DNA of 64,000 nucleotides from Octopus sinensis. Its lineage: Eukaryota. A program made the position numbers and the translations under genes. This document shows, one piece after another, positions 281 through 61,483 of this stretch; the stretch's first letter is position 1; each line of letters starts with the position of its first letter. The notes below the pieces were generated by a model. It saw nothing but the letters and a program-made list of their open reading frames with translations. It ran no database searches and was not told the origin of the DNA. The DNA is taken from assembly GCF_006345805.1 (NCBI RefSeq), contig NC_043001.1, forward strand, positions 13,764,001-13,828,000, given 5' to 3'.

Positions 281-511
281 AAGGCGGTGAGCTGGCAGAG
301 TCGTTAGCACGCCGAGCGAAATGCGTATCCGTATTTCGTCTGCCGTTACGTTCTGTGTTCAAATTCTGCCGAGGTCGACTTTGCCTTTCATCCTTTCGGG
401 GTCGATAAATTAAGTACCAGTTACGCACTGGGATCGATGTAATCGACTTAATCTGTTTGTCTGTCCTTATTTGTCCCCTCTATGTTTAGCCCCTTGTGGA
501 CAGTAAAGAAA
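281..511 (+). mobile_element. tRNA-derived SINE family 1 (Tx1-like tail), monomer
   Basis: A-box-like GGTGAGCTGGCAGAG and B-box-like GTTCAAATTC; conserved body GCCTTTCATCCTTTCGGGGTCGATAAA; probable TSD ATATATAAATACA (260-272 / 517-529). Confidence 0.85.
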
Positions 512-1525
512 TATATATATATAAATACAGAGTGGATCAAGAACGCAACAGAAGTCAATAAAACATCAGGAAAGATAGACAATGAAAAGACGGACAGGAA
601 TATATATATATATATGTAACTGGAAGTATTTTTCTTACCATTGTGAGAAACAATATGCACAGCACGAAAGCAAATAGGGAAACGGGATAAATAATATTAG
701 TGGGAAGTAATGTCTGTATAATAGTTTCAAAATACAATAAATTGTTTTAATGAAGGACATAGTCGAACCCGGTGGAATTTGAACTCAGAATGAAAAGACA
801 TAAAATTCCTCTAAGCATCATTGCTCGTCGTGCATACTGATTCAGGCCTCTCACCACCTTACGATTTGTGATATATTATCTAAGTATGTTATAAGCACAC
901 ACATATGTGCTTACATATTCTTGTTTCTCTAAATTAAGATACTTGACACGTATATAAATGGTTTTATACTTTAGTGATCGTACTCCCAAAAGATACCATT
1001 AGGCGAATATTTCATAGGGTTAATTCAAACCATTTCACACATTAAAGTTTTCCACTTATAAAGTTTACTGTAGATTCAATGTATTTCATTGTTTTCACCG
1101 TTCAATTAGTTTAAATGTTTTGAACGTGACTAAATCAGATAATGTGCATGGAGTAACAAAAGCGATTTCACATTTCATATAAGTTACGAAATCTTGTGGT
1201 TTTCACAAATAGCTTCCTACAGCTTCCCAGCACCGCTTCTTTTCAATAAAGCATCTTTTTATCCCTCTTTGGTCATATATAATGTATGTCTCATGTAGCT
1301 GTCTTCTCACCAAATACTTGTTTAAGTATTGTAATTTACAGATACTCTTCACTGTAACACTGTCTACGCAAATACTTATAATTTACAGAGAGAAAAATCT
1401 AAATAGATGTAGATGATATGAAGTATATATTTAAGCACTTGTTCAAGTCTCATGGCTTCCCGGTAACGAATTTCTATGCAACACATGGATAGTTTATACT
1501 GTTTATGCTATTGTATTAGCATTAT

Positions 1526-2126
1526 AAGGCGACGAGTTGGCAGAAACGTTAGCACACCAGGCGAAATTCTTAGCAGTATTTCGTCTGCTATTACACTCTG
1601 AGTTCAAATTCCGCCAAGGTCAACTTTGCCTTTCATCCTTTCCGGGTCGATAAATTAAGTACCAGTTACGCACTGGGGTCGATATAATCGACTTAATCCG
1701 TTTGTCTGTCCGTGTTTGTTCTCTCTGTGTTTAGCCCCTTGTGGGTAGTAAAGAAAAAGGTATTTCGTCTGCTGTTACACTCTGAGTTCAAATTCCGCCG
1801 AGGTCAGCTTTGCCTTTCATCCTTTCCGGGTCGATAAATTAAGTACCAGTTACGCACTGAGGTCGATATAATCGACTTAATCCGGTTGTCTGTCCGTGTT
1901 TGTTCTCTCTGTGTTTAGCCCCTTGTGGGTAGTAAAGAAAAAGGTATTTCGTCTGCTGTTACACTGAGTTCAAATTCCGCCGAAGTCAACTTTGCCTTTC
2001 ATCCTTTCCGGGTCGATAAATTAAGTACCAGTTACGCACTGGGGTCGATATAATCGACTTAATCCGTTTATCTGTCCTTGTTTGTCCTCTCTGTGTTTAG
2101 CCCCTTGTGGGTAGTAAAGAAATAGG
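1526..2126 (+). mobile_element. SINE family 1, head + three tandem units
   Basis: ~180-nt unit repeated three times from GGTATTTCGTC; 17-bp TSD TATTGTATTAGCATTAT (1509-1525 / 2127-2143). Confidence 0.9.
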
Positions 2127-11503: not shown

Positions 11504-11784
11504 GTTTCTTTATTGGCCACACAGGGCTGCACACAGATGGGACAAGTTACAAGGTAGAGCTTTTCTTTTGGGGGATGAAAAAAACAAAAAACAAAAGAAA
11601 CAAAAAAAGGGGTGGCGTAGGTTTTCGATCAAGAGGGATCGTAAAAGGGAAGAAAAGAACAAAAAAAATAAAATTAAAATAATAAAATAAAAATAATAAA
11701 AAAAAGAAGAAAAGGAAAAGGAACAAAAGAAAAGAGAAATGAAAAAAGAAGAAAAAAGGGGAAAAAAGGGGAAGAGGGAAAAAA
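11504..11784 (-). mobile_element. Tx1-like element copy A, 3' UTR-only fragment
   Basis: Same 3' terminus; flanked by (TA)n on the left and a (GATA)n linker on the right. Shares TTGGCC and GTTACAAGG variants with copy D. Confidence 0.85.
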
Positions 11785-11805
11785 GATAGATAGATAGATA
11801 GATAT

Positions 11806-12855
11806 GTTTCTTTATTAGCCACACAGGGCTGCACACAGACGGGACAAATTACAAAGTAGAGCTTTTCTTTTGGGGATAAAAAAGGTGGTTTGGTTTTCGA
11901 TCAAAAGGGATCGTAAAAGGAAAGAAAGAATAAAACAAAAAAGGGGGGATAAAAAGAAAAGGAAAAGGAAAAAAAATCAATCAATAAGGATCGTTATCAC
12001 AGAAATGTCAATATAAAGTGTAAAGGAGAGGACAGGTGAGGTTTACCCGTGGAAAGAAAAGCCTACGGAAAAGACCATGGTAACCTCGGTCAATGAAGTC
12101 CCATGTATTTTTTTTTTTGCAAATAAGCAACTCTCTGTATTAATTTTTTACGGTTCATAGGATCATAGTCAAGGTGGCTTCGTCATTCATACGTGCCATC
12201 CTTGCTACATTCACCCATCTTTTTTTAAAACATTCACTAGACAAAACTTGCCTCTCTTCTCTCACTTTCCTCTTCAAGTGATACTTGAAGAAGTTGATGA
12301 GAGATTGACCAGAGAAGAAAGTGTTTGTCTCTAATCCTTTCAGGCGCGTCCACCAGATACATTCTTTCGCCATAGCCACAAGCATGATAAAAATAGCTCT
12401 TCCTTCCCGTTTGAAGGAAGGAGGCGTGACGATATTAACGATAGACTCGGCTGATAAACCGACTCGTCCCACACGTGACAGCAGTCGTTCGACATAAGCC
12501 CACAGGTCAGAGATTGTTGGACACTGCACGATTGCGTGCAGAACGGTTTCGTCGCTCTGCGCGCATCTCGGGCAGGTCGGCCCCGTGTTTCTCGAGCCAT
12601 GCCTATAGAGCTTATCCCGAACGGGTAGCGCTTCTCGGTAGCACTGCCAGGCCAGGGATCTCTGGAAGTTGTCCATAGGTCCCGGCCCGAAAGTCGTTTG
12701 AAACAGGCGGGTCAGGTATTCCTCGTCGACGCCCAGGTTTGCCCCAGGATCATCGTCGTACCTCCCCTCCACTAATCCCCTATAGAATGCTTTGGTTGTG
12801 TTGAAGTCACTCAAGGTCGACCCGGGACGGCAGAGTTGCTTGAGAGCAACGCGGC
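11806..12855 (-). mobile_element. Tx1-like element copy B, 5'-truncated (3' UTR + last ~230 codons of ORF2)
   Basis: ORF 12155-12814 contains [18 protein letters not shown] and matches the ORF2 C-terminus of E and F. The 5' break is joined to (GATA)n at 12856-13022. Confidence 0.9.
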
Positions 12856-12938
<83 letters not shown>

Positions 12939-12943
12939 TGGTT

Positions 12944-13022
<79 letters not shown>
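12856..13022. repeat. (GATA)n microsatellite flanking Tx1 copy B
   Basis: About 40 tandem GATA units. Confidence 0.97.
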
Positions 13023-14978: not shown

Positions 14979-15034
<56 letters not shown>

Positions 15035-16250: not shown

Positions 16251-16341
<91 letters not shown>

Positions 16342-16604: not shown

Positions 16605-16614
16605 AGATAGGTAA

Positions 16615-16647
<33 letters not shown>

Positions 16648-16652
16648 CAGAC

Positions 16653-16730
<78 letters not shown>

Positions 16731-16742
16731 GTAAATATATAT

Positions 16743-16793
<51 letters not shown>

Positions 16794-16846
16794 TATAGGT
16801 AGATAGGTAGTTAGATAGATAGGTAGATAGATAGATAGATATATAA
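16605..16846. repeat. (GATA)n microsatellite flanking the Tx1 array on the left
   Basis: Tandem GATA with GGTA/TA interruptions. Confidence 0.97.
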
Positions 16847-17493
16847 GTTTCTTTATTAGCCACACAGGGCTGCACACAGATGGGACAAATTACAAGGTAG
16901 AGCTTTTCTTTTTGGGGATGAAAAAAAAAGTGGGGTAGGTTTTCGATCAAAAGGGATCGTAAAAGGGAAAAAAGTAAAAAAGAAAAAAAGGAAAAGAAAC
17001 AAAAGAAAAGAAAAAAGAAAAAAAGGAGAGAAAAAGAAAGAAAAAAAGGGGAAAAAGAAAAAAACTATCAATAGGGATCGTGTATCACAGTGTCATAACG
17101 TACGGTTCAAAGGTGGAAGCACATTAGGTTTATCCGTGGGAAGAAAAGCCTATGGAAAAGACCACGGTAACCTCGGTCAATGTTGTTACATGTTACCACA
17201 TTTGTTTGCAAGTGGGTAACCCTCTTTTTTCAATTTCTGGGTTCATAGGATTATGCTCAATGTGGCTCCGTCATTCATACATACCATCCTTGCTACATTC
17301 ACCCTTCTTTTTTTAAAACATTCGCTAGGCAAAACTTGCCTCTCTACTCTCACTTTCCTTTTCAAGTGGTACTTGAAGAAGTTGATGAGAGATTGACCAG
17401 AGAGGAAAGTGTTTGTCTCCAATCCTTTTAGACACGTCCACCAGATACATTCTTTCGCCATAGCCACCAGGATGATGAAAATAGCTCTTCCTT
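16847..17493 (-). mobile_element. Tx1-like element copy C, 5'-truncated, divergent 3' UTR variant
   Basis: Same terminal ~110 nt and ORF2 C-terminus ([23 protein letters not shown], 17243-17467), but the internal 3' UTR at 17080-17240 differs from copies B, E and F. Confidence 0.88.
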
Positions 17494-17499
17494 AGATAA

Positions 17500-17736
17500 G
17501 TTTCTTTATTGGCCACACAGGGCTGCACACAGATGGGACAAGTTACAAGGTAGAACTTTTCTTTTGGGGGATGAAAAAAACAAAAAACAAAAAACAAAAG
17601 AAGCAAGAAAAAAGGTGGCGTAGGTTTTCGATCAAAAGGGATCGTAAAAGGAAATAAAAAGAACAAAAAATTAAATTTTAAAAAATTAAAAAAAGAAAAA
17701 AAGGAAAAGGAAGAAAAGAAGAAAAAAAAAAAGAAG
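17500..17736 (-). mobile_element. Tx1-like element copy D, 3' UTR-only fragment
   Basis: Begins GTTTCTTTATTGGCCACACAGGGCTG and is separated from its neighbours by AGATAA and GATAGATAT linkers. Confidence 0.85.
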
Positions 17737-17746
17737 AGATAGATAT

Positions 17747-20700
17747 GTTTCTTTATTAGCCACACAGGGCTGCACACAGATAGAACAAATTACAAGGTAG
17801 AGCTTTTCTTTTGAAGGTTAAAAAAAAAAAAAAAAGGAAGGGGGAGTTTCGATCAAAAGGGATCGTAAAAGGAGAGAAAGAGGACAAAAAAAAAGGGGGG
17901 GGGGTTAAAAAAAAAAAAAAAAGGGGGAGAGGAAAAAAAATTGATCAATAGGGATCGTTATCACAGAAATGTCAATATGAAGTGTAAAGGGGAGGACAGG
18001 TGAGGTTTACCCGCGAAAGAAAAGCCTACGGAAAAGACCACGGTAACCTCGGTCAATGAAGTCACATTTTATATTTCTTTTTTTTTTTTTTTTTTTTGCA
18101 AATAAGCAACTCTCTGTTTTCGATTTCTGGCTTCATAGGACTATGCTCAAGGTGGCTTCGTCATTCATACGTGCCATTCTGCTACATTCACACCCATCTT
18201 TTTAAAACATTCGCTAGACAAAACTTGCCTCTCTACTCTCACTTTCCTTTTCAAGTGGTACTTGAAGAAGTTGATGAGAGATTGACCAGAGAGGAAAGTG
18301 TTTGTCTCCAATCCTTTCAGACGCGTCCACCAGATACATTCTTTCGCCATAGCCACAAGGATGATGAAAATAGCTCTTCCTTCCCGTTTGAAGGAAGGAG
18401 GCGTGACAATTTGGCGATAGACTCAGCTGATAAACCGACTCGTCCCACACGTGACAGCAGTTGTTCGACATAAGCCCACAGGTCGGAAATTGTTGGACAC
18501 TGAACGAGTGCGTGCAGAACGGTTTCGTCGCTCTGACCGCATCTCGGGCAGGTCGGCCCCGTGTTTCTCGAGCCGTGTCTGTAGAGCTTATCCCGAACGG
18601 GTAGCGCTTCTCGGTAGCACTGCCAGGCCAGGGATCTCTGGAAGTTGTCCATGGGCCCTGGCCCGAAAGTCGTCCCGAACAGGCGGGTCAGGTACTCCTC
18701 GTCGACGTCGAGGTTCGCCCCGAGCTCGTCGTCGTACCTCCCCTCCACTAAACCCCTATAGAATGCTTTGGTTGTGTTGAAGTCACTTAAGGTCGACCCA
18801 GGACGGCAGAGTTGCTTGAGAGCAACGCGACACTCGCGGTGCCATTCGCCCTTCCTCGGCCTCTTTTTGATCCACGACTGCAGTTCGGTCATGGAGACGA
18901 GCTGCGGGAAAGCGTGCCTCAAAAACGGCGACCACACCTGTTCACCGTCGCCTACATAGAGCCAGAGATGTCGCAGTCTCAGCGCGTGTCTGCGCATCAT
19001 CAACCACGGCATGCCCAGCCCTCCTTTTAACGGGTGTTGACAGCAAATGGATCGCCTGACCATCGGGACGCATCCTTTCCACAAGAAGCGAAAGAGGATG
19101 CGTTGTAGTTTGGTGATGGTAGGGTCGGGACAAGGTACGACGGTCAGGCGGTAGTAGAGGACGGACGCGATGTACGTGTTCGCCACCTCCGCTCGACCTT
19201 TTAGGGACAGTTTCCTCTCGGCCATTGCCGGGCGAGAGTGACCACCCTACTCGTTATCTCGTTCCAGTTCTTCTCCACTGGAGGTCCGGACCAAACCAGA
19301 CCCCGAGCAACTCAACCGGGCCGTCGGTCCAGCGTCCCACGACGGAGGCGCTGGTGGACGGCATGGGCTTGCTTCTCCAGGTGCCTAGTCGCAAGCCCAC
19401 TGACTTTTCCCGGTTGATTTTCGCTCCTGTCACTGCTTCGTAGTTTTTTCAGTGTCTCGCCGACCAGCTCGATGTGCTCGTGGCTAGACACTATGACGGT
19501 GACGTCGTCCGCGTTGCAGAAACGCTCGTCCCGCATCCCAATTCTCGCGGGATGCCCCTTAGAGTCGCCAGCTTCCGCAGTAGTGGCTCAAGAGTCAATA
19601 CGTATAGAAGCGCCGAGAGGGGGCATCCCTGACGGACCGAACGTGCAATGTCGAAAGGTCTCGATAGATGTCCATTTACGCGAATTACCGAACGGATGCC
19701 TCTGTACAAGGCAGCTATCCAGCCGCGGAAGACGGGACCGAAACCAGCCGCTCTCAGGACTGCCTCCAAGTATCGATGGTCTACCCTATCAAAGGCTTTC
19801 GATTGATCCAAGTTGATCAGGGCCCCACCCATGCCAGGTTCGTTAACTACCCTGTCTATGATGTAGCGCATCAGATGGAGGTTGTCATGGATGGTCCGGC
19901 CTGGCACGGCGCATGTTTGCGCCTTGTCGACCAGTTTCTCGATGACAAGCGCCAACCTCTTGGCTAGCACCTTGGCCAAAATTTTCAAGTCTGCATTAAG
20001 CAGAGTGATGGCCTAAAGTTATCTATTACATTTCCCTTGTTTAGATCTTTCTTCAGCAGTGTTACGGCTCCTCGGCTCACAAAACCAGGAATGCTCCCGT
20101 TTTGCTGCCAGTTGCAGTACACCGCCGCCAAGAGATCTCCAAACAAGTCTGGCATACAATTGTAAAGCTCGTAGTAGACCATCCAAACCCGGAGATTTGT
20201 CCCTCGAGCATTCTGCCATCGCTTCCCGCACTTCCGCCGCCGTGATGGCACCTTCGCAGCACCCTGCCTTTCTTGTCGAGAGTCGTGGTAGGCTATGTAG
20301 GTAGGCACTGAAGTCCACCCTACGTTCTTGCCCTCCACTCGTTCCGAACAGTCGGGCAAAATGCTGCTGAAAGGCCTCACACATTTTACTTGGCTCGAGC
20401 AATTCGCGCCCCTGTTCATCTACCAGTGACCGAATGGTGGCTTTGTTGCCCTGTTGCGCCTCTGCCACCCGGGCCTCTCTCGCGGCTCCAACACCTTCGT
20501 TCCTTAGAGCACGCATCCTAGCTCTGACAGCACATCCTTCGTGTTTGGCGTTGAAGTGTTGGTCGAGGGCCAACCTCGCCGCCAAAACGTCGGATGCGAT
20601 GCCGCTTCTAATTGCCTCTTCTAGCTTCTTAACTAGCTCAACCTCTACTCTATTTCTGTCTATGGCTAGTGCTTTGCTGTACCTAATCGCTTCTGCTTTT

Positions 20701-21898
20701 ACTGCTCTATTGAGGGCAAACCACCATTTGTTGTTGATGATGGCTCCCGTCAAAGCCCTCTTTACTAGTGTGCTAATCCGGTCTCTGAAAACTTGTCTCG
20801 ATGGGAAAGACGCGTTTAGTTTCCAGTATCCGGGACCCTGCCTAAGTGTCTTACCTAAGTCTAGCGTACATGTCACAAGTTTGTGATCCGTGTAGCTGAC
20901 TATGTGGAATTGTGGACATCCTATGCTATCTCTATCTACTGTCCTACACAGTATCCTATCTAGATACGATCTCGACGACCCGATGCGGTTGCTCCATGTC
21001 CACGTTGGCGCATTCGGGTGGTCTAGTCGGAACCTGTCAGACAGTTGAAAGCGTCTGAGCAGGTCTCTGAGGCATTTGCATCCCCGTCTATTCCTATCTC
21101 TACCCACGTAGTCTACATGCGTGTCCAAGTAGCATTCCAATCCCACTAAGAGTAAAGGACGAGACGTTCCAAGAAAACTTCTAGACGTTGAAAGAAATCC
21201 GCCGACCTGTTAGGGCGGTGCGTAAACTGATACGAGTCGAAAAGCGCACCCATTGCTGCCGTCGACATCCAGGACGACCAGTCTACCCTCCGGGTCTACG
21301 AATATTGTCCTTACATTGAGATCCAGACTCTTGTGAAAAAGTACCGCGGTGCCACTACCGCCCATTCTCGGCAGACAGGGGGAAAAATAAACGTTGAAAC
21401 TGTCCGCCAAACATGGTCTTTAGGGCCCGCGGATTGTGGAGTCTGGTCTCGCTTATGGCTATGATTTCTACTTATGTGACTTTATGTCATTTAGAGGTCC
21501 CTTGTTTCAAGGGGACCCCAAGCCACGCGCATTTACACAACCAATCTTGATCATAGTTCTAATGAATTAGAATACAGAGGGTTACTTACTGCTCGAAAGT
21601 TTTTGCTTTCTCCTCCGTTGGTTTGTCCTCGAGAAGATCCCAGTACAGTTTCTTTGTGAGATATTTTTGGCATTTACAACCGCACTGGGGAAAATGCCTT
21701 TGAGTGTGTGGTGCAGACTTTTGGAGATGTGTAATATTTTGATGTGGTCTGGTGTGTTGTGTATGGGTGATTGTTTGTTTTTATGTCATCTTCTGTTATG
21801 TTTGTTTTTGATTGGATGTATTCCATCAAATTTGTGTTTTTGGTGTCTATGGCTGTGAGCATGTTTGCTGTATATGTTTTTGTGGTGTTGGTGTGGCT
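17747..21898 (-). mobile_element. Tx1-like element copy E, 5'-truncated within the end of ORF1
   Basis: Near-identical to copy F over ~4.15 kb. 3' end AATAAAGAAAC at 17747; the 5' break at 21898 is joined directly to (GATA)/(GGTA)n. Confidence 0.92.
18133..21554 (-). CDS. Tx1-like ORF2 (APE + RT + zinc finger), copy E, frameshifted
   Basis: Starts MIKIGCVNARGLG at 21554. Contains SYLDRIL, YTDHKLV, GPGYWKLN, LDQSKAFD, RQGCPLS and [18 protein letters not shown]; TGA at 18133-18135. Confidence 0.92.
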
Positions 21899-22014
21899 AT
21901 AGATAGATAGATAGGTAGGTAGGTAGGTAGGTAGGTAGGTAGGTAAGTAGGTAGGTAGGTAGGTAGGTAGGTAGATAGATAGGTAAATAGATAGGTCGAT
22001 AGATAGATAGATAT
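21899..22014. repeat. (GGTA)/(GATA)n linker between Tx1 copies E and F
   Basis: Tandem tetranucleotides visible directly. Confidence 0.97.
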
Positions 22015-22378
22015 GTTTCTTTATTAGCCACACAGGGCTGCACACAGATAGAACAAATTACAAGGTAGAGCTTTTCTTTTGAAGGTTTAAAAAAGAAAAA
22101 AAAAAGGAAGGGGGAGTTTCGATCAAAAGGGATCGTAAAAGGAGAGAAAGAGGACAAACAAAAAGGGGGAGAGGAAAAAAAAAAAATTGATCAATAGGGA
22201 TCGTTATCACAGAAATGTTAATATGAAGTGTAAAGGGGAGGACAGGTGAGGTTTACCCGTGGAAAGAAAAGCCTACGGAAAAGACCACGGTAACCTCAGT
22301 CAATGAAGTCACATTTTATATTTCTTTTTTTTTTTTTTTTTTTGCAAATAAGCAACTCTCTGTTTTCGATTTCTGGGT

Positions 22379-25300
22379 TCATAGGACTATGCTCCAGGTG
22401 CTTCGTCATTCATACGTGCCATTCTTGCTACATTCACCCATCTTTTTTTAAAACATTCGCTAGACAAAACTTGCCTCTCTACTCTCACTCTCACTTTTCC
22501 TTTTCAAGTGGTACTTGAAGAAGTTGATGAGAGATTGACCAGAGAGGAAGTGTTTGTCTCCAATCCTTTCAGACGCGTCCACCAGATACATTCTTTCGCC
22601 ATAGCCACAAGGATGATGAAAATAGCTCTTCCTTCCCGTTTGAAGGAAGGAGGCGTGACAATATTGACGATAGACTCAGCTGATAAACCGACTCGTCCCA
22701 CACGTGACAGCAGTTGTTCGACATAAGCCCACAGGTCGGAAATTGTTGGACACTGAACGAGTGCGTGCAGAACGGTTTCGTCGCTCTGACCGCATCTCGG
22801 GCAGGTCGGCCCCGTGTTTCTCGAGCCGTGTCTGTAGAGCTTATCCCGAACGGGTAGCGCTTCTCGGTAGCACTGCCAGGCCAGGGATCTCTGGAAGTTG
22901 TCCATGGGCCCTGGCCCGAAAGTCGTCCTCCTGAACAGGCGGGTCAGGTACTCCTCGTCGACGTCCAGGTTCGCCCCGAGCTCGTCGTCGTACCTCCCCT
23001 CCACTAAACCCCTATAGAATGCTTTGGTTGTGTTGAAGTCACTTAAGGTCGACCCAGGACGGCAGAGTTGCTTGAGAGCAACGCGACACTCGCGGTGCCA
23101 TTCGCCCTTCCTCGGCCTCTTTTTGATCCACGACTGCAGTTCGGTCATGGAGACGAGCTGCGGGAAGGCGTGCCTCACAAACGGCGACCACACCTGTTTC
23201 CGTCGTCTACATAGAGCCAGAGATGTCGCAGTCTCAGCGCGTGTCTGCGCATCATCAACCACGGCATGCCCAGCCCTCCTTTTAACGGGTGTTGACAGCA
23301 AATGGATCGCCTGACCATCGGGACGCATCCTTTCCACAAGAAGCGAAAGAGGATGCGTTGTAGTTTGGTGATGGTAGGGTCGGGACAAGGTACGACGGTC
23401 AGGCGGTAGTAGAGGACGGACGCGATGTACGTGTTCGCCACCTCCGCTCGACCTTTTAGGGACAGTTTCCTCTCGGCCCATTGCCGGGCGAGAGTGACCA
23501 CCCTACTCGTTATCTCGTTCCAGTTCTTCTCCACTTGAAGGTCCGACCAAACCAGACCCCGAGCAACTCAACCGGGCCGTCGGTCCAGCGTCCACGACGG
23601 AGGCGCTGGTGGACGGCATGGGCTTGCTTCACCAGGTGCCTAGTCGCAAGCCCACTGACTTTTCCCGGTTGATTTTCGCTCCTGTCACCGCTTCGTAGTT
23701 TTTCAGTGTCTCGCCGACCAGCTCGATGTGCTCGTGGCTAGACACTATGACGGTGACGTCGTCCGCGTATGCAGACACGCTCGTCCCGCATCCCAATTCT
23801 CGCGGGATGCCCCTTAGAGTCGCCAGCTTCCGCAGTAGTGGCTCAAGAGTCAATACGTATAGAAGCGCCGAGAGGGGGCATCCCTGACGGACCGAACGTG
23901 CAATGTCGAAAGGTCTCGATAGATGTCCATTTACGCGAATTACCGAACGGATGCCTCTGTACAAGGCAACTATCCAGCCGCGGAAGACGGGACCGAAACC
24001 AGCCGCTCTCAGGACTGCCTCCAAGTATCGATGGTCTACCCTATCAAAGGCTTTCGATTGATCCAAGTTGATCAGGGCTCCACCCATGCCAGGTTCGTTA
24101 ACTACCCAGTCTATGATGTAGCGCATCAGATGGAGGTTGTCATGGATGGTCCGGCCTGGCACGGCGCATGTTTGCGCCTTGTCGACCAGTTTCTCGATGA
24201 CCAGCGCCAACCTCTTGGCTAGCACCTTGGCCAAAATTTTCAAGTCTGCATTAAGCAGAGTGATGGGCCTAAAGTTATCTATTACATTTCCCTTGTTTAG
24301 ATCTTTCTTCAGCAGTGTTACGGCTCCTCGGCTCACAAACCAGGAATGCTCCCGTTTTGCTGCCAGTTGCAGTACACCGCCGCCAGAGATCTCCAAACAA
24401 GTCTGGCATACAATTGTAAAGCTCGTAGGGTAGACCATCCAAACCCGGTGATTTGTCCCTCGAGCATTCTGCCATCGCTTCCCGCACTTCCGCCGCCGTG
24501 ATGGCACCTTCGCAGCACCCTGCCTTTCTTGTCGAGAGTCGTGGTAGGCTATGTAGGTAGGCACTGAAGTCCACCCTACGTTCTTGCCCTCCACTCGTTC
24601 CGAACAGTCGGGCAAAATGCTGCTGAAAGGCCTCACACATTTTACTTGGCTCGAGCAATTCGCGCCCCTGTTCATCTACCAGTGACCGAATGGTGGCTTT
24701 GTTGCCCTGTTGCGCCTCTGCCACCCGGGCCTCTCTCGCGGCTCCAACACCTTCGTTCCTTAGAGCACGCATCCTAGCTCTGACAGCACATCCTTCGTGT
24801 TTGGCGTTGAAGTGTTGGTCGAGGGCCAACCTCGCCGCCAAAACGTCGGATGCGATGCCGCTTCTAATTGCCTCTGCTAGCTTCTTAACTAGCTCACCTC
24901 TACTCTATTTCTTTCTATCTATGGCTAGTGCTTTGCTGTACCTAATCGCTTCTGCTTTTACTGCTCTCTTGAGGGCAAACCACCATTTGTTGTTGATGAT
25001 GGCTTCCGTCAAAGCCCTCTTTACTAGTGTGCTAATCCGGTCTCTGAAAACTTGTCTCGATGGGAAAGACGCGTTTTAGTTTCCAGTATCCGGGACCCTG
25101 CCTAAGTGTCTTACCTAAATCTAGCGTACATGTCACAAGTTTGTGATCCGTGTAGCTGACTATGTGGAATTGTGGACATCCTATGCTATCTCTATCTACT
25201 GTCCTACACAGTATCCTATCTAGATACGATCTCGACGACCCGATGCGGTTGCTCCATGTCCACGTTGGCGCATTCGGGTGGTCTAGTCGGACCTGTCAGA

Positions 25301-25807
25301 CAGTTGAAAGCGTCTGAGCAGGTCTCTGAGGCATTTGCATCCCCGTCTATTCCTATCTCTACCCACGTAGTCTACATGCGTGTCCAAGGTAGCATTCCAA
25401 TCCCCCACTAAGAGTAAAGGACGAGACGTTCCCAAGAAAACTTCTAGACGTTGAAAGAAATCCGCCCGACCTGTTAAGGGCGGTGCGTAAACTGATACGA
25501 GTCGAAAAGCGCACCCATTGCTGCCGTCGACATCCAGGACGACCAGTCTACGAATATTGTCCTTACATTGAGATCCAGACTCTTGTGAAAAAGTACCGCG
25601 GTGCCACTACCGCCCATTCTCGGCAGACAGGGGGAAAAATAAATGTTGAACTGTCCGCCAAACATGGTCTTTAGGGCCCGCGGATTGTGGAGTCTGGTCT
25701 CGCTTATGGCTATGATTTCTAACTTATGTGACTTTATGTCATTTAAGAGGTACCCTTGTTTCCAAGGGACCCCAAGCCACGCGCATTTACACACCAATCT
25801 TGATCAT
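22379..25807 (-). CDS. Tx1-like ORF2 (APE endonuclease + reverse transcriptase + C-terminal zinc finger), frameshifted, copy F
   Basis: Motifs across frames: [80 protein letters not shown] 13-nt deletion between GTCTAC repeats near 25545 relative to copy E breaks the frame. Confidence 0.92.
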
Positions 25808-25926
25808 AGTTCTAATGAATTAGAATACAGAGGGTTACTTACTGCTCGAAAGTTTTTGCTTTCTCCTCCGTTGGTTTGTCCTCGAGAAGATCCCAGTACA
25901 GTTTCTTTGTGAGATATTTTTGGCAT

Positions 25927-28925
25927 TTACCAACCGCACTGGGGAAAATGCCTTTGAGTGTGTGGTGCAGACTTTTGGAGATGTGTAATATTTTGATGTG
26001 GTCTGGTGGTGTTTGTATGGTGATTGTTTGTTTTTATGTCATCTTCTGTTATGTTTGTTTTTGATTGGATGTATTCCATCAAATTTGTGTTTTTGGTGTC
26101 TATGGCTGTGAGCATGTTTGCTGTATATGTTTTTGTGGTGTTGGTGTGGCTGTTGTTTTTGCGTTGGGTTTTGAAATGTCTTCGGGAGATGTATTTCCCC
26201 CTGCTTTGTTCGTGTTGCATTTGGTTTGGTTGTGTTTTCTGCTCTTTATTTTCCTTCTTTTTGTAGCTATTTGCCATTCCTCACTGGTTTCGTCTTCCGA
26301 CGAAATTTCTGAGGAATCAGAAGGGGGTAGGGGTATGTTTGTGGGTTTCTATGTATGTCTGTGTAAGTGGTTTGTGTTGTTGTTTTCGTTGTTGTTGGTT
26401 GTTGAGTGTTTGTGTGTGTTGAGTGCGGTATAAGGGATGGGGGATCAGTTTGTGTGGTGTTTTTCTTTGTTTTTCTGTTCCTTTGGGTTTTGCTGTTGTT
26501 GGTGGTGTGGTATTTTTTTCAGGTGTGAGTGGTTTTGGTTGAGACGGATTAGCTTGTGTGCTTCTCTTGTCGTCTCTGTGTTGATGGTGGTGTGGGTAGT
26601 AGAGCTTTTTTTCCGGAGTGCTTTGGTTGTGGTAGTGGTTGTTGTTGTTGCTCTTGGTGTGCAGTGGTTGGGCACGTCTTTTTCAAGTGTGTTTCGCTTC
26701 CACACAAATAGCAGCGTGGTCGCCTGCCCTCTACCACTATATAGAGTTTGTAGCCCCTGGCAGTTCTATAGAGGTGGGTATCTTCTCTCTTGCTGCTTCA
26801 TCCAATGAAGCAGGAATTCGATTGATTTGCCCCATAGTCTTTCTCTCCTAGAACCGCGATTTCCAGGATGTTTGTCTCTGACATTGTCTCTGACATTTCA
26901 AAGCAGATGGCAGAGACCACCATTGTGTTTTCGACATCAAATGGTATGTTTTTTTATTTGGACTTTCGTGACCCTTTTGTTTAAATAGACTGGTATCATT
27001 ACCAAGTCGTCCGAATGCAGCTCCAATGTGGAAAAACGTTTTTTCTAACTTCGTTGAGGAAACGTACTTGGACGTACCAATTTGTTTCCCCAACTGATAT
27101 ATTCCTTGGAGTCCCATACAGGACGAAGGCATTTTTCGATTTTTTCCTGCGGTGCATTTTCTGTTCTTCTTGTTTTTTTGTTATTACTTTATAAATTATT
27201 GTTTTTTTTGTGTGTTNNNNNNNNNNNNNNNNNNNNNNNNNNNNNNNNNNNNNNNNNNNNNNNNNNNNNNNNNNNNNNNNNNNNNNNNNNNNNNNNNNNN
27301 NNNNNNNNNNNNNNNNTTGCATTTGGTTGGTTGTTGTTTCTGCTCTTTATTTTCCTTCTTTTTGTAGCTATTTGCCATTCCTCACTGGTTTCGTCTTCCG
27401 ACGAAATTTCTGAGGAATCAGAAGGGGGTAGGGGTATGTTGTGGGTTTCTATGTATGTCTGTGTAAGTGGTTGTGTTGTTGTTTCGTTGTTGTTGGTTGT
27501 TGAGTGTTTGTGTGTGTTGAGTGCGGTATAAGGGATGGGGGATCAGTTTGTGTGTGTTTTCTTTGTTTTTCTGTTCTTTGGTTTGCTGTGTTGGTGGTGT
27601 TGGTTATTTTTTCAGGTGTTGAGTGGTTTTGGTTGATGACGGATTAGCTTGGTGTGCTTCTCTTGTCGTCTTCTGTGTTGATGGTGGTGTGGGTAGTAGA
27701 GCTTTTTTCCGGAGTGCTTTGGTTGTGGTAGTGGTTGTTGTTGTTGCTCTTGGTGTGCAGTGGTGGGCACGTCTTTTTCAAGTGTGTTTCGCTTCCACAC
27801 AAATAGCAGCGTGGTCGCCTGCCCTCTCCACTATATAGTTTGTAGCCTCCTGGCAGTTCTATAGAGGTGGGTATCTTCTCTCTTGCTGCTTCATCCAATT
27901 GAAGCAGGAATTCGATTGATTTGCCCACATAGTCTTTCTCTCCTAGAACGCGATTTCCAGGATGTTTGTCTCTGACATTGTCTCTGACATTTCAAAGCAG
28001 ATGGCAGAGACCAACCATTGTGTTTCGACATCAAATGGTATGTTTTTATTGGACTTTCGTGACCCTTTGTTTAAATAGACTGGTATCATTACCAAGTCGT
28101 CCGAATGCAGCTCCAATGTGGAAAAACGTTTTCTAAACTTTCGTTGAGGAAACGTACTTGGACTGTACAAATTTGTTTCCCCAACTGATATATTCCTTGG
28201 AGTCCCATGCAGGACGAAGGCATTTTTCGATTTTTTCCTGCGGTGCATTTCCTGTTTCTTGTTTTTTTGTTTATTACTTTATAAATTATTGTTTTTTTTT
28301 GTGTGTTTTCCACGATGTGTTGTGGAATATGAAGGTGCAATTTGTCTCCTTCTTTGGAGAAGAGTGCCTTTGTGCGGTATATCTCTTGTGTGGTGAATGT
28401 TACAATTGTTCTTTTTTGTTTTGTTACGTCCGCAAAATTCGTTTTGAATTTGGCAGTAGAAGTGTTAATTGTGGCAGTGTTAATTGAAGCCATGGTAGTG
28501 GTGTTGGTGTTGGCGATATTAGCAGCAGAAGGCTTGGATGTAGCATTTGACGTCGTAGTAGTGGTGTTGGTGTTGGCGGTGTTGTCTTTGGTAGGCGCTT
28601 TGTGCCAATTTCGTTGTTGTTGTTGTTGGTGGTGATGGTGGTGGTGCTGGCATTCATGTTTTCGTTTGTATTCATTTTTGAAAATCCCTTTCTCTGTCCC
28701 TTTATCATCAACAAGTGGTGGGGGAGTGAGGGGAAATCTAAGTTAATGTCTTTGGTCGCGGCGATGGTGAATGCGACGTTAGATTTGTTGTTGTTGGTGG
28801 TGGTGGTGGTGATGGTGGTGACAGCGGTGTTCACGCTGCGATGTTTTTAGCAGTAGTGGTAGCAATAGTGTTTTGCTACCGTTCTGCATGACTGGCGGGC
28901 TAGCCACGTGGTTTCTAGTTGCCAT
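25927..28925 (-). CDS. Tx1-like ORF1 (gag-like nucleic-acid-binding protein with one CCHC knuckle), frameshifted
   Basis: GRRPRCYLCGSETHLKKTCP zinc knuckle at ~26690-26750 and again at ~27770-27830 (assembly overlap). Lies upstream of ORF2 on the same strand, with T/N/Q/H-rich low-complexity flanks. Putative ATG at 28925 (MATRNH...). Confidence 0.78.
27217..27316. other. Assembly gap (100 N) with ~1 kb contig overlap
   Basis: 26215-27216 is repeated at 27317-28307, differing mostly by small indels. Confidence 0.9.
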
Positions 28926-35528: not shown

Positions 35529-35922
35529 AGGAGGCGAGCTGGCAGAATCGTTAACACACCGGGCGAAATGCTCAGCGGTATTTCGTCTGCCGCTACGTTC
35601 TGAGTTCAAATTCCGCCGACGTCGACTTTGCCTTTCATCCTTTCGGGGTCGATTAAATAAGTACCAGTTACGCACTGGGGTCGATATAATCGACTTAATC
35701 TGTTTGTCTGTCCTTGTTTGTCCTCTCTGTTTTTAGCCCCTTGTGGGTAGTAAAGAAATAGGTATTTCGAACATTTTCACGTTCTCCTCTCAAATTCTGT
35801 CGTTAACTTTCATCATTTAGGTTTGATTTTTAAAAAAATAGGTACCAGTTGAGTAATGATGTCGATTTAATCGACATAGCCCTTCTCTAAAATATCTGGT
35901 CTTGTGCCAAAATTTGAAATCA
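35529..35922 (+). mobile_element. SINE family 1, head + unit + degenerate second unit with alternative tail
   Basis: The second unit from 35761 is diverged and ends CTGGTCTTGTGCCAAAATTTGAAA. Confidence 0.8.
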
Positions 35923-39036: not shown

Positions 39037-39269
39037 ACTATTTCTTTACTGCCTACAAGGGGCTAAAGATAGAGTGGACAAACAAGGACAGACACGGATT
39101 AAGTCGATTATATCGACTCCAGTGTGCAACTGGTAATTAATTTAGCGACCCTGAAAGGATGAAAGACAAAGTCGACCTCGGCGGAATTTGAACTCAGAAC
39201 GTTACGGCAGACGAAATACTGCTACGCATTTCGCCCGGCGTGCTAACGTTTCTGCCAGCTTGCCGCCTT
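39037..39269 (-). mobile_element. SINE family 1 monomer
   Basis: Full head-to-tail match; 14-bp TSD CTTTAAATCTAATA (39023-39036 / 39270-39283). Confidence 0.88.
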
Positions 39270-41966: not shown

Positions 41967-42472
41967 TATAATATCAGGAGATGTTTGATAGCCGGGTAAG
42001 AAACTCGTTTAATAAATAAATATCTCACGAAATAGTTGAAGAAAGCATTAGAACATTCTACACTATTATGACTTCTTGACTAGCAGAGGCATTTACTGCC
42101 GTGTCTGTCATATCGTAAATGGACAAACGTGAGAGGCAGCGTAAACTTGTATTTGCGGAATTGGCTGACTCGGTTTATTTGGAGGCCATCTTGTATCAGA
42201 AAGACTCCATTAATTATGTATTCACGTATTTGTATACTAGTAGACATTTTAGTGCAATTGTCCTTCTTCCACCGAGTCTCATTTTTTATATACCTCACAC
42301 GTACGCACACCTTATGTAACCTGTCTTTGAAATGTCTATTTCAATTGACGCCCCGGAGGCAAATACAGGAAATGATCATAATAATGAGAATAATAGTGAT
42401 AGTTGTTATTATTATTTGTTGTTGTTTTCATCATGATAATAATTTTGTTATCGATAGTTTTAATGTTTCTTA

Positions 42473-42704
42473 TTTCTTTATTGCCCACAAGGGTCTAAAC
42501 ATAGAGGGGACAAACAAGGACAGACAAAGGAATTAAGTCGATTACATCTACCCCAGTGCATAACTGGTACTTAATTTATCGACCTCGAAAGGATTGAAAG
42601 GCAAAGTCGACCTCGGGGGAATTTGAACTCAGAACTTTGCAGCAGACGAAACATTGCTAAGCATTTCGCCCCGCGCGCTAACGTTTCTGACTGCTCGCCG
42701 CCTT
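42473..42704 (-). mobile_element. SINE family 1 monomer
   Basis: Full-length match to the other copies. Confidence 0.85.
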
Positions 42705-43103: not shown

Positions 43104-43870
43104 AAGGCAGGGAGATGGCAGAATCCTTAGCATGTCGGGCGAAATCTTGACGGTATTTCGTCTGCCGTTACGTTGTGAGTTCAAATTCCGCCGAGGTCGA
43201 CTTTGCCTTTAATCCTTTCAGGGTCGATAAATTAAGTACCAGTTACGCACTGGGGTCGATGTAATCGACTTAATCCGTTTGTCTGTCCTTGTTCGTCCAC
43301 TCTATGTTTAGCCCCTTGTGGGTAGTAAAGAAATAGGTATTTCATCTGTCGTTACGTTCTGAGTTCAAATTCCGCCGAGCTCGACTTTGCCTTTCATCCT
43401 TTCGGGGTCGATAAATTAAGTACCACTTACGCACTGGGGTCGATGTAATCGACTTAATCCGTTTGTCTGTCCTTGTTTGTCCACTCTATGTTTAGCCCCT
43501 TGTGGGTAGTAAAGAAATAGGTATTTCGTCTATCGATACGTTCTGAGCTCAAATTCCGCCGAGGTCGACTCTGCCATTCATCCTTTCGGGGTCAATAAAT
43601 TAAGTACCAGTTACGAACTGGGGTCAATGTAATCGAATTAATCCGTTTGTCTGTCCTTGTTTGTCCTCTCTGTGTTTAGCCCCTTGTGGGTAATAAAGAA
43701 ATAGGTATTTCGTCTGTCATTACGTGCTGCGTTCAAATTCAGCCGAGGTCGACTTTGCTTTCATCTTTTCGGGGTCGATAAATTAAGTACCAGTTACGAA
43801 CTGGGGTCGATTTAATCGACTGGCCCCCCTCTCACAAAATTTCGGGCCTTGTGCCGAGAATCGAAAAGAA
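43104..43870 (+). mobile_element. SINE family 1, head + four tandem units (last with alternative tail)
   Basis: Each unit begins GGTATTTC; the first three end AAAGAAATA and the fourth ends AAATTTCGGGCCTTGTGCC. Confidence 0.88.
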
Positions 43871-47915: not shown

Positions 47916-48028
47916 TATTTCTTTATTGCCCACAAGGGGCTAAACATAGAGGGGACAAACAAGGACAGACAAACAGATTAAGTCGATTATATCGATCCCA
48001 GTGCGTAAGTGGTACTTATTTAATCGAC
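47916..48028 (-). mobile_element. SINE family 1, 3' half
   Basis: Tail and part of the body, fused to a Helitron fragment at 48030. Confidence 0.75.
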
Positions 48029-48768
48029 ATGGTGTTAACATGGTCCAATTTGAATTTTTTCTTCTACGGAAGGAAGAGTAAGCCTTCTATCATACTCTCA
48101 ATTTTGGTCAAATTACGCCGCAGACAACTTCAGCTTTATATATAGAGAGATGTAAAAAATATGCAATAGTATTAACAGCTTTTCCTCTTAGTTTTTAGAG
48201 GGACGCGTTCTGGTGTAAGAATGATATCTTGGTTTTGTTAATGGAGACAGATTAGAAATATGCTCCCGATGAAAAATGTGTATTTTGCCAAGAATACTCC
48301 CAATTGAATGTGGTAATGTGATTGACAAAGCTGAGACGCCGAAGAAAGCGTAAGATGGAAGGGAAGATTTCTTTCTCCCTCGGCCTGTAAAAATTCGTGT
48401 ATACTTAAAAATATTTTCAAATCCTCTACGGTGAGTTACGTTTAGTACCGTCCGAAAGCCATTTGTTATGTCGAGCGTCAACCGCTGCAAGGTAATGTAT
48501 TTCATTTTGATAAAAGTCTGGAAGGGTTTTGCCGCCAAACACAACGTACCGTGACAAGCTTTTAGGTATAACTTTTCACGTTTCTATAAATTCTTGAATA
48601 ATTCGTATGCTATTAATTCCTTCATGCGAAATTTTTCAGAATCAATATTTAACAATTTTCGACGTAGCATAATAAGTACATGGTTCCTGAAGCAATTACG
48701 ATAGGGAGGGAGAGCAATTCGCTGGTCCAATGGAGTTAGACAGGAGCAGCGACTGTAAAATTGTCGTT

Positions 48769-49514: not shown

Positions 49515-49894
49515 AAGGCGGTGAGCTGGCAGAAACGTTAGCGCGCCGGGTGAAATGCTTAGCAGTATTTCGTCTGCTGTTACGTTCTGAGTTCAAATTC
49601 CGCCGAGGTCGACTTTGCCTTTCATCCTTTCGGGGTCGATTAAATAAGTACTGGGGGCGATATAATCGACTTAATCTGTTTGTCTGTCCTTTTTTGTCCT
49701 CTCTGTGTTTAGCCCCTTGTGGGTAGTAAAGAAATAGGTATTTCGAACGTTTTCACGTTCTCCTCTCAAATTCTATCCTTCAGGTTTGATCTTTAAAAAA
49801 AGGTACCAGTTGACTAATGGAGTCGATTTAATCGACATAGCCCTTCTCTAAATATCCTCTCTGTATTTATCCCCTTGTGAGCAGTAAAGAAATA
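49515..49894 (+). mobile_element. SINE family 1 dimer with degenerate second unit
   Basis: 20-bp TSD GAAAAACAGTTCTAATCCGG (49495-49514 / 49895-49914). Confidence 0.88.
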
Positions 49895-53777: not shown

Positions 53778-54014
53778 CCACCTATTTCTTTACTATCCAC
53801 AAGGGACTAAACACAGAGAGGACAAACGAGGACAGACAAACGGATTAAGTCGATTATATCGACTCCAGTGCGTAACTGGTTCTTATTTAATCGACCCCGA
53901 AAGGATGAAAGGCAAAGTCAACCTCGGCGGAATTTGAACTCAGAACGTAGCGGTAGACGCAATACCGCTAGGCATTTCGTGCAGCGTGCTAATGTTTCAG
54001 CCAGTTCGCCACCT
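53778..54014 (-). mobile_element. SINE family 1 monomer
   Basis: 16-bp TSD TTTGTCAACGAATCTG (53762-53777 / 54015-54030). Confidence 0.88.
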
Positions 54015-60048: not shown

Positions 60049-60461
60049 TTTCTTATTTACTGCCCACAAGGGGCTACACACATAGAGGACAAACAAGGAC
60101 AGACAAACGGATTAAGTCGATTATATCGACCTCGGTGCGTAACTGGTACTTATTTAATCGACCCCGAAAGGATGAAAGGCAAAGTCGACCTCGGCGGAAT
60201 TTGAACTCAGAACGTAGCAACAGACGAAATACCTATTTCTTTACTGCACACAAGGGGCTAAACACAGAGGGCGGAAAACAAGGACAGACAAACGGATTAA
60301 GTTGATTATGTCGACCCCAGTGCGTAACTGATACTTGTTTTATCGACCCCGAAATGATGAAAGGCAAAGTCGACCTCGGCGGAATTTGAACTCAGAACAT
60401 AACGGCAGACGAAATAGTGCTGAACATTTAACCCGGCATGCGAACGATTCTGCCATCTCGC
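60049..60461 (-). mobile_element. SINE family 1 dimer
   Basis: Two units joined at GAAATACC|TATTTCTTT, with the head at the right end. Confidence 0.85.
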
Positions 60462-61066: not shown

Positions 61067-61483
61067 AAGGCGGTGAGCTGGCAGAAACGTTAGCACGCCG
61101 GGCGAAATGCGTAGCGTATTTCGTCTGTCGTTACGTTGTGAGTTCAAATTCCGCCGAGGTCAACTTTGCCTTTCATCCTTTCGGGGTCGATAAATCAAGT
61201 ACCAGTTACGAACTGGGGGTCGATGTAATCAACTTAATACCTATGTCTGTCCTTGTTTGTCCCCTCTATGTTTAGCTCTTTGTGGGTAATAAAGAAATAG
61301 GTATTTCGTCCGCTGCTGCGTTCTGAGTTCAAATTCCGCCGAGGTCGACTTTGCCTTTCATCCTTTCGGGGTCGATAAATTAAGTACCAATTACGCACTG
61401 GGCTCGATGTAATAGACTCAATCCGTTTGTCTGTCCTTGTTTTCCCCCTCTATGTTTAGCCCCTTGTGGGTAGTAAAGAAATA
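61067..61483 (+). mobile_element. SINE family 1 dimer
   Basis: 13-bp TSD CGTATTTTATGTA (61053-61065 / 61484-61496). Confidence 0.88.

Follow-up and report, generated by a model that had tools for sequence, protein, structure and literature searches.

A common 3′ terminal segment suggests a partnership between a tRNA-like SINE and an L1-superfamily LINE in octopods

Introduction

SINEs make up the largest class of repeats in Octopus genomes, and brain transcripts and lncRNAs show an enrichment of them (PMC8967140, PMC9115989). In papers on octopus repeats, tRNA-Core and tRNA-Deu SINEs predominate and L1-Tx1 elements appear among the LINEs, and the two are never paired (PMC8967140, PMC13282606, PMC9115989, PMC9795677). 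A 2012–13 survey of 58 SINE/LINE pairs with shared tails, mostly involving CR1/L2 and RTE elements and in a few cases plant or algal L1 elements, contains no Tx1 pair and no mollusc pair, and gives octopus SINEs no partner LINE (PMC3747384). The LINE that amplifies the octopus SINEs is unnamed in the literature that we searched. The locus described here, a 64-kb stretch of DNA that was analysed as a whole and is referred to below as the window, carries copies of a tRNA-like SINE, its most frequent short repeat, together with copies of a LINE whose 3′ end resembles that of the SINE, and thereby raises the question of whether this LINE lineage mobilises the SINE. The original prediction was that the SINE is a non-autonomous partner of a Tx1-group LINE, either the family present in the window or a close relative of it. 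This reading fits all of the sequence evidence presented below; the Tx1 label is one that we infer.

Results

The SINE and the LINE end in the same segment

The LINE-sense 3′ end, that is the reverse complement of positions 16848–16897, reads CCTTGTAATTTGTCCCATCTGTGTGCAGCCCTGTGTGGCTAATAAAGAAA, and the third unit of the SINE array at 43104–43870 terminates in ...CCTTGTTTGTCCTCTCTGTGTTTAGCCCCTTGTGGGTAATAAAGAAA at position 43701 (tail segment 43660–43701). The original prediction of a shared tail with 35 of 42 positions identical was reproduced by blastn-short as an ungapped alignment with seven mismatches, and the further match that had been noted beyond a 3-nt gap was recovered by local alignment, which adds CCTTG past that one gap. 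When consensus tails are compared, the SINE and the LINE agree at 38/50 positions (score 25, z = 9.3), and the SINE subfamily carrying GGGCAATAAAGAAA, as represented by the 47918 copy, agrees with the LINE tail at 39/50 (score 27, z = 10.0). The null distribution for these scores was built from 2000 dinucleotide shuffles (mean 8.8, standard deviation 1.7–1.8, maximum 17–18), none of which attained the score of the SINE/LINE match; with its one gap, the tail match lies far above these controls (z = 9–10). The likeness reaches 35–40 nt upstream of the AATAAA motif, and the SINE tail and the tail of the window LINE differ at seven fixed positions.

Within the 64 kb, the LINE tail has no blastn-short matches other than itself and the tails of the SINEs, and the converse is also true; the tail motif was counted 17 times at SINE ends and six times at LINE ends. 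All of this evidence is drawn from a single 64-kb window and from four LINE loci fetched in addition. The LINE tails compared with the SINE belong to this one lineage, and a still closer tail may exist among the other abundant octopus LINE clades (RTE-BovB, CR1, Dong-R4). No other LINE family was found in the window, where all open reading frames of at least 130 amino acids with a Pfam match belong to the same LINE.

Arrangement of LINE and SINE copies in the window

The positions of the LINE copies, the microsatellites adjoining them and the SINE copies are compiled in Table 1. The tail forms the 3′ terminus of all six LINE copies in the window. In A1, B1, B3 and C the tail follows without a break on the end of ORF2 and a 3′UTR of approximately 350–450 nt, and these copies are mutually only 83–87% alike (87% for A1 and B, 83–84% for B3 and the corresponding part of B1), with the exception of B and C, which are 97.5% identical over 4 kb. 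For this reason the presence of the tail at LINE ends cannot be attributed to a later insertion into one copy; judged by their divergence, the four are old, separate copies. The double-tail arrangement seen at B2 recurs in copy A, with 85.7% identity. Copy C contains zf-RVT (22504–23481), RVT_1 (23629–24675), an endonuclease fragment (25474–25797) and an ORF1-like region. In B1 the reading frames of the endonuclease, the reverse transcriptase and zf-RVT are broken by frameshifts, and an intact ORF2 was not found anywhere in the 64-kb window.

Table 1. Positions of LINE copies, microsatellites and SINE copies in the window.
Feature	Position	Strand	Description
LINE piece A2	11505..11795	-	3′UTR fragment and tail (11505-11559); joined to (TATC)5 after A1
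LINE copy A1	11807..12853	-	5′-truncated; ORF2 C-terminus including zf-RVT, 3′UTR, tail (11807-11861)
(TATC)n tract, 167 bp	12856..13022	-	adjoins A1 5′ end
(TATC)n microsatellite after B3 tail	16605..16847	-	LINE terminal repeat or else target tract
LINE 3′ tail, copy B3	16848..16902	-	ends ...GGCTAATAAAGAAA, then C and TTATATA(TCTA)n
LINE piece B3	16848..17493	-	5′-truncated; ORF2 end, 3′UTR, tail; joins B2 tail
LINE piece B2	17501..17739	-	about 240 bp of 3′UTR and GGCCAATAAAGAAA tail variant
LINE copy B1	17748..21898	-	5′-truncated; tail (17748-17802) preceded by 3′UTR
(TATC)n/(TACC)n microsatellite	21899..22015	-	between copy C tail and copy B 5′ end
LINE copy C, longest	22016..27000	-	tail 22016-22070; 5′ limit uncertain, N gap near 27100
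Single SINE copy	283..513	+	13-15 nt target-site duplication ATATATAAATACA
SINE array, three tails	1528..2124	+	17-nt target-site duplication TATTGTATTAGCATTAT
SINE copy and strongly diverged second unit	35530..35760	+	
SINE copy	39039..39267	-	tail 93% identical to query tail
SINE copy, GGGCAATAAAGAAA subfamily	42471..42702	-	
SINE array	43106..43821	+	full first unit (tRNA-like head) followed by 184-bp units; tail ends 43333, 43517, 43701
SINE copy, GGGCAATAAAGAAA subfamily	47916..48060	-	5′-truncated; subfamily nearest LINE tails
SINE copy and diverged second unit	49517..49894	+	
SINE copy	53783..54013	-	16-nt perfect target-site duplication CAGATTCGTTGACAAA
SINE array, two units	60056..60416	-	
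SINE array, two units	61069..61483	+	13-nt target-site duplication CGTATTTTATGTA

Each LINE tail is followed by C(A/T)TA(TCTA)n or by TA repeats, and since all of the tails run into such repeats the LINE ends in a microsatellite and not in poly(A). The SINE terminates in AAAGAAATA with the target-site duplication directly after it, so the original prediction that neither element carries a poly(A) tail was borne out. The (TATC)n or TA microsatellite that follows every LINE tail had been overlooked in that prediction; the SINE has no TATC or ATT repeat at its end.

The tail is retained in 17/17 SINE copies in the window, which are 88–100% identical to the tail consensus, none of them being demonstrably young. 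The SINE contains A-box-like (TGGCAGAA) and B-box-like (GAGTTCAAATTCC) sequences of the kind found in type-2 promoters of RNA polymerase III, and a tRNA was recognised in its head neither by ARAGORN nor by Rfam at gathering thresholds. As a probe for the central ~60-nt CORE domain of the CORE-SINE superfamily (octopus OR-type), a non-curated MIR consensus was aligned locally with the SINE; its score of 13 did not differ significantly from that of shuffled sequences (mean 11).

Classification of the LINE

The broken reading frames of the window LINE match RVT_1 (2e-30) and zf-RVT (3e-8) and, weakly, Exo_endo_phos in Pfam. Longer frames are available in a relative from Argonauta hians (L008), which matches Exo_endo_phos (5e-11), RVT_1 and zf-RVT and has a 639-residue ORF1 upstream. 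The best match of known structure in the PDB is human L1 ORF2p (E = 5e-22). A CX2CX4HX4C knuckle, CYLCGSETHLKKTC, lies in an ORF1-like region of copy C at 26549–26737, upstream of the endonuclease; neither this region nor the Argonauta ORF1 had a Pfam match. ORF2 combines an endonuclease of APE type with a reverse transcriptase and, at its C-terminus, a CCHC motif (zf-RVT), the layout expected for the Tx1 clade.

By its predicted domain architecture, the LINE lineage is placed in the L1 superfamily. Database matches to its ORF2 are unnamed cephalopod proteins that supply no clade name, and assignment to the Tx1 branch, which we consider most probable, draws on the domains, the zinc knuckle of ORF1, the association with microsatellites and the literature on molluscs. 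A list of mollusc LINE clades based on ORFs and trees includes Tx1 and names no L1 clade (PMC10294476), the recently active LINEs of O. vulgaris include 13 L1-Tx1 families as well as RTE, CR1 and Dong-R4 elements (PMC13282606), and microsatellite targeting is common among families of the Tx1 clade (PMC4494074).

The tail is conserved in octopod relatives of the LINE

Relatives were found with the ORF2 C-terminus as query and the contigs encoding them were fetched, which provided three further LINE 3′ ends. The element on a JGI contig (L001, 69–76% protein identity) ends in ...GGGCCCTTGTGGCCAATAAAAGAAATC(ATT)n, i.e. ...TCCGGGCCCTTGTGGCCAATAAAAGAAATC(ATT)n, the Argonauta hians element (L008, 56% protein identity) ends in ...GTCCCCTCTATGTTTTTGCCCTTGTGGCTAATAAAAGAAATA(ATT)5, i.e. 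...GTATCGTCCCCTCTATGTTTTTGCCCTTGTGGCTAATAAAAGAAATA(ATT)5, and the element on a Logan contig (L029, 58% protein identity) ends at the contig edge in ...GTTTAACCCTTGTGGTTTGAATAAA, i.e. ...CCCGTCTTTGTTTAACCCTTGTGGTTTGAATAAA. Tail identity between the LINEs ranges from 36/50 to 40/49, whereas the 3′UTRs outside the tail are 43–59% aligned with many gaps. That the tail is conserved while the remaining 3′UTR can barely be aligned marks it as the constrained part of the 3′UTR across this octopod LINE lineage.

The window SINE tail is slightly closer to the Argonauta LINE tail (42/52, z = 10.7, score 30) than to that of the window LINE (score 27), and has an identical 15-mer, GTCCCCTCTATGTTT, in common with it. 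By these comparisons the SINE tail sits within the diversity of the LINE tails, an indication that the SINE captured its tail from the LINE lineage. Two relatives from cuttlefish/ENA records (L003 and L004, 52–57% identity in the reverse transcriptase) have 3′UTRs that could not be aligned and in which no clear tail was recognised. The sequences of two other relatives (L006 and L007) stop short of the tail, and that of another (L028) is interrupted. A protein-pattern scan of metagenome contigs for LINE 3′ ends returned 55 matches, of which 0 were confirmed, and 19 matches to a DNA pattern of the tail in the same contigs were rejected as chance occurrences, as the upstream similarity was absent.

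The tails could in principle resemble each other by chance, or because both contain a common signal for 3′-end formation (AATAAA and an A-rich stretch) without shared descent. Both do end in a low-complexity AATAAAGAAA-like motif, and the blastn-short E-values of single tail copies are modest (0.009). On the other side, no dinucleotide shuffle attains the observed score, there is no other match site in the 64 kb, and the similarity lies well upstream of the AATAAA motif and includes the 15-mer identical to the Argonauta LINE, unlike the rejected metagenome matches, which have the look that chance matches would be expected to have. We regard coincidence or a common processing signal as extremely improbable.

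Two SINE families of Argonauta carry the LINE-type tail

The Argonauta SINE data come from one 20.8-kb locus, in which copies homologous to the window SINE in both the mid-body motif and the tail are located at approximately 4480–4740 and 11915–12160. The mid-body motif differs from that of the window SINE by 3 mismatches in 22 nt, and the two tails read ...CCCCTCTATGTTCGGCCCTTGTGGCTAA... and ...TTCGGCCCGTTTGGCTAATAGAGAAATC. A second, tRNA-like SINE of 157 bp forms an array at 4900–5352 and ends in TGTTCGGCCCTTGTGGCTAATAGAGAAATC, so that two Argonauta SINE families with unrelated heads bear the LINE-type tail. Between 4480 and 5352 the first SINE, a 130-bp LINE 3′ fragment with (ATT)18 and three units of the short SINE abut one another in this order. 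In Argonauta the SINE and the LINE have the segment GCCCTTGTGGCTAA of their tails exactly in common; in the window the two elements differ at those positions.

These arrangements bear on the direction of transfer. If the LINE end had come from the SINE, whether through an inserted 3′ fragment or through recombination, the tail would carry no information on what moves the SINE, and the stacking of 5′-truncated elements on resident tails offers in principle a route by which the 3′ remnant of a SINE might have been retained as the end of a LINE. Such an origin would nevertheless have to account for a tail at the end of four LINE lineages whose ORF2 proteins are up to 44% divergent, for its presence behind two unrelated SINE heads in Argonauta, and for the finding that no LINE copy has any further SINE-derived sequence beside the tail; we consider it very unlikely. 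Capture in the other direction is the preferred reading: the last ~50 nt of the SINE are quite likely to be a captured 3′ terminal element of an octopod LINE lineage of the L1 superfamily, most probably Tx1.

Integration signatures and stacking

The original prediction gave the SINE copies target-site duplications of 13–20 bp. Duplications are present at four of the seven insertions that could be assessed, with lengths of 13–15, 17, 13 and 16(–21) nt, that is 13–17 nt apart from the one upper bound, and the claim holds for these insertions; the others are without a clear duplication. Two of the four duplications enclose whole multi-unit SINE arrays.

In the window, (TATC)n adjoins each of the four independent LINE 5′ junctions, a sample of only 4–5 junctions in which a target tract is indistinguishable from a tail repeat made by the element itself. 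A1 adjoins the 167-bp tract, B1 the tail repeat of copy C and B3 that of B2, while A2 and B2 adjoin those of A1 and B1, respectively. LINEs and SINEs are stacked tail-to-head at the LINE terminal microsatellite. In Argonauta this microsatellite is (ATT)n, in the window (TATC)n.

Secondary structure of the tail

A further element of the original prediction, a GCC..GGC hairpin directly before AATAAA in both tails, found no support. RNAalifold placed 0 base pairs in 10 LINE and SINE tails, the 4-bp GCC..GGC stem requires different registers in the LINE and the SINE, and neither register shows more pairing or covariation than column-shuffled controls.

Small hairpins are present outside the shared segment. 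In the LINE 3′UTRs one lies upstream of it, with stems GAUC/GAUC, GUGUU/AACAC, CCCCC/GGGGG and CCUC/GAGG across the relatives, and the SINE has a 7–8 bp hairpin (GGUCGAU..AUCGACU) 20 nt before the tail. The LINE and SINE hairpins are not homologous in sequence and each is weak (z from 0 to -3.7), and they are to be taken as leads only.

Discussion

A LINE lineage as the probable mover of the SINE

The sequence comparisons suggest that the LINE lineage very probably copies the SINE in trans. The SINE would be transcribed from its tRNA-like internal promoter, and the tail of the resulting RNA would be offered to the ORF2 protein of a LINE of the same lineage, in the manner of 'stringent' 3′-end recognition. 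The RNA would be copied at the nicked target by target-primed reverse transcription, giving rise to duplications of 13–17 bp. The terminal repeat of the LINE, (TATC)n in the window and (ATT)n in the relatives, would probably pair with the nicked target, and this pairing may steer new copies into like tracts and onto resident tails. The tail-to-head stacks would be explained if the terminal repeat guides integration in this way. Proven stringent pairs usually have their terminal repeats in common. Here the terminal short repeats differ, as the LINEs end in (TATC)n or (ATT)n and the SINE in none, which counts against the SINE/LINE pairing. Further points against it are the seven differences from the tail of the window LINE, the lack of support for the hairpin from energy or covariation, and the absence of an intact ORF2 from the window.

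Within the lineage, a close relative appears more likely to be the driver than the exact family of the window, because LINE tails of the (ATT)n type resemble the SINE tail more closely and the SINE is without a (TATC)n end. The window family would have in its favour that LINE and SINE co-occur in the window, that the 97.5% identity of B and C indicates a recently active family, and that 35 of 42 tail positions match. The SINE tail nevertheless scores higher with the (ATT)n-type tail of Argonauta (30 against 27), the SINE ends in AAAGAAATA with no TATC repeat, and GCCCTTGTGGCTAA is exact between SINE and LINE in Argonauta only, so that we find it rather doubtful that the (TATC)n family itself currently drives the SINE. 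A sister family whose tail comes closer to GCCC(C)TTGTGGG/C-T/C-AATAAAGAAATA is a more likely actual driver than the broken (TATC)n family.

The tail might also be a fossil of an old capture, with a LINE from a different clade mobilising the SINE today or with the SINE no longer mobile. None of the SINE copies is demonstrably young, their identity to the tail consensus being 88–100%, and RTE, CR1 and Dong-R4 elements are among the recently active LINEs of O. vulgaris (PMC13282606). Retention of the tail in every one of the 17 window copies and the stacking of Argonauta SINEs on LINE tails, which implies a shared integration preference, argue against this, and the same species has 13 recently active L1-Tx1 families (PMC13282606); a fossil tail is in our judgement unlikely. 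Returning to mobilisation by the LINE lineage, we incline, with some reserve, to the broader view that an octopod-wide LINE of L1/Tx1 type, and not an RTE, CR1 or L2 element, drives the SINE expansion that makes up about a tenth of the octopus genome. In this expansion an element of ~50 nt would have been captured by several independent tRNA-SINE families, and integration would be directed to the LINE's own microsatellite or tail, building head-to-tail arrays.

Significance

The proposed partnership is a new example of a well-known type of tail sharing and not a new mechanism; what is unusual is a partner of Tx1 type. A literature search for an octopus SINE/LINE pair or a tail-sharing pair involving Tx1 returned only the work of Kojima (2015), which argues from target preference, and curated libraries such as Repbase and Dfam may already imply an octopod SINE/LINE pair. 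If the assignment is correct, it would be the first well-documented 3′-tail-sharing SINE partnership for the Tx1 branch and would indicate that stringent 3′-end recognition is present in animal elements of the L1 superfamily. It would thereby add an animal case to the argument, which now draws mainly on plants and algae, that stringent recognition is ancestral in this superfamily. An L1/Tx1-type element is in addition a concrete and testable driver for the octopus-specific SINE expansion, and tail-directed stacking would offer a simple account of the many tandem SINE arrays, which make these genomes harder to assemble and their repeats harder to annotate.

Comparison with known SINE/LINE systems

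The experimentally proven pair of stringent type is UnaL2/UnaSINE1 of the eel, in which the LINE belongs to the L2 clade (Kajikawa & Okada 2002, as cited in PMC3747384). As in that pair, the octopod SINE has its last ~50–60 nt in common with the LINE, a short tandem repeat takes the place of poly(A) at the LINE terminus, and the tail is the conserved part of the LINE 3′UTR. The octopod case differs in that the LINE is L1/Tx1-like, the SINE is without a terminal repeat, the shared segment has no supported stem-loop and the case is built on sequence comparison.

For Tx1 elements, the crocodilian Tx1-Mar has been inferred to mobilise SINEU from their common target (Mariner-N4_AMi) and from snRNA-derived 5′ heads (Kojima 2015, PMC4494074). 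In both cases a LINE of the Tx1 group, in octopods a probable one, would mobilise SINEs, and part of the argument is a common integration preference, with elements piling up at the same sites. In octopods, by contrast, the two elements are linked by the 3′ tail that they share, and the heads of the SINEs resemble tRNAs. Microsatellite-specific LINEs of the Tx1 clade include Kibi at (TC)n, Koshi at (TTC)n and crocodilian families at (TTCC)n or (TTTC)n (PMC4494074). As with Kibi and Koshi, one type of microsatellite flanks the octopod LINE on both sides and all visible 5′ junctions lie at (TATC)n; the octopod units are TATC and ATT, and with 4–5 junctions a target repeat and a self-generated one look the same.

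Stringent pairs are known from the L1 superfamily in maize, where LINE1-1_ZM is paired with ZmSINE2/3, and in Chlamydomonas, where L1-1_CR is paired with SINEX-3_CR (Ohshima 2012/2013, PMC3472496, PMC3747384). The octopod pair resembles these in that a conserved 3′ end of ~50 nt of what would be a stringent-type L1-superfamily LINE is shared with tRNA SINEs. The plant and algal elements differ from it in ending in poly(A) or T runs, and the maize tail forms a hairpin with compensatory changes, of which the shared segment in octopods gave no sign.

The window SINE itself has the tRNA-like head and the very high copy number in an octopod genome that characterise previously described octopus SINEs. 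Ohshima and Okada reportedly described three of these, the tRNA-derived OK, OR1 and OR2, in 1994. Elements annotated as 'tRNA-Core' SINEs dominate the octopus repeat annotations (PMC8967140). By these general features, the window SINE probably belongs to the same family as one of OK, OR1, OR2 and the tRNA-Core SINEs.

Stacking at terminal microsatellites

Within the window, copies of the LINE and 5'-truncated LINE pieces are stacked tail to head through the (TATC)n microsatellite that terminates this element (11505-13022 and 16605-22070). At the Argonauta hians locus L008 (4480-5352), a SINE, a fragment from a LINE 3' end and a second, different SINE are likewise stacked through (ATT)18. Together the two arrangements suggest that integration is directed to the terminal repeat of the element itself. 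A further (TATC)n tract of 175 bp, in minus-strand sense, lies at window positions 29160-29334 with no recognisable LINE tail adjoining it; such tracts therefore occur also independently of the LINE, and they could act as targets. The 5' end of the LINE as represented by copy C is unreliable here, since an N run (assembly gap) interrupts the 5' part of this copy at ~27100-27200 and the sequence flanking the gap is duplicated on both sides (26065-26433 versus 27082-27531).

SINE arrays and variants

The SINE forms head-to-tail arrays with a unit of 184 bp at 1576-2130, 43152-43821, 60056-60416 and 61100-61481. Units are always joined as AAAGAAA(T/A)A followed by GGTATTTCG, and because this junction falls at SINE position ~50, the later units are without the A-box part. 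The arrays at 1528-2124 and 61069-61483 each have a single target-site duplication at their flanks, and the units of one array have array-specific variants in common. In the last unit of the third-listed stretch's array, at 43800-43870, ...GGGGTCGATTTAATCGAC is followed by an unrelated 3' sequence, TGGCCCCCCTCTCACAAAATTTCGGGCCTTGTGCCGAGAATCG..., that occurs only once in the window; it may belong to a variant of the SINE that has another tail, or it may mark the junction of a deletion. Two other SINE copies share a second unit behind them that is strongly diverged, GGTATTTCGAAC(A/G)TTTTCACGTTCTCCTCTCAAATTCT... (35758-35800 and 49734-49894), which suggests an old dimeric SINE subfamily. A second, distinct tRNA-like short repeat on the minus strand, GGTGGAGGCGCGTAGGTTATTGGTTAGGG...GGTTTCGATTCCTGGGCCGGG... 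(~42740-42870), immediately precedes the SINE copy that occupies 42471-42702.

Other repeats

Three copies of a segment of ~170-260 bp, 98% identical, lie in a stretch of 1.3 kb (15031-15200, 15442-15703 and 16001-16259), with one copy inverted and AT dinucleotide tracts adjoining. A local rearrangement may account for them, or the segment may be a small foldback element. Three units of TTAACCCTAACCCTAAAACC at 63710-63773 form a degenerate telomere-like (TTAGGG/CCCTAA) interstitial repeat.

A hairpin in the LINE 3'UTR

The 3'UTR of the LINE contains a small hairpin that keeps its position among relatives and differs in stem sequence, the stems being GAUC/GAUC, GUGUU/AACAC, CCCCC/GGGGG, CCCC/GGGG and CCUC/GAGG. 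These differences may be compensatory changes, and the structural element concerned would then lie beyond the part that the LINE and the SINE have in common.

Positions of the LINE 3'UTR hairpin in the window and in fetched relatives
Sequence	Position	Strand	Remarks
Window	~22180-22200 and 22120-22140	minus	equivalents in copies A, B
L001 (JGI contig)	~1850-1870		
L006 (LINE relative)	~1050-1065		
L007 (LINE relative)	~1620-1635		
L008 (Argonauta hians)	~11058-11075
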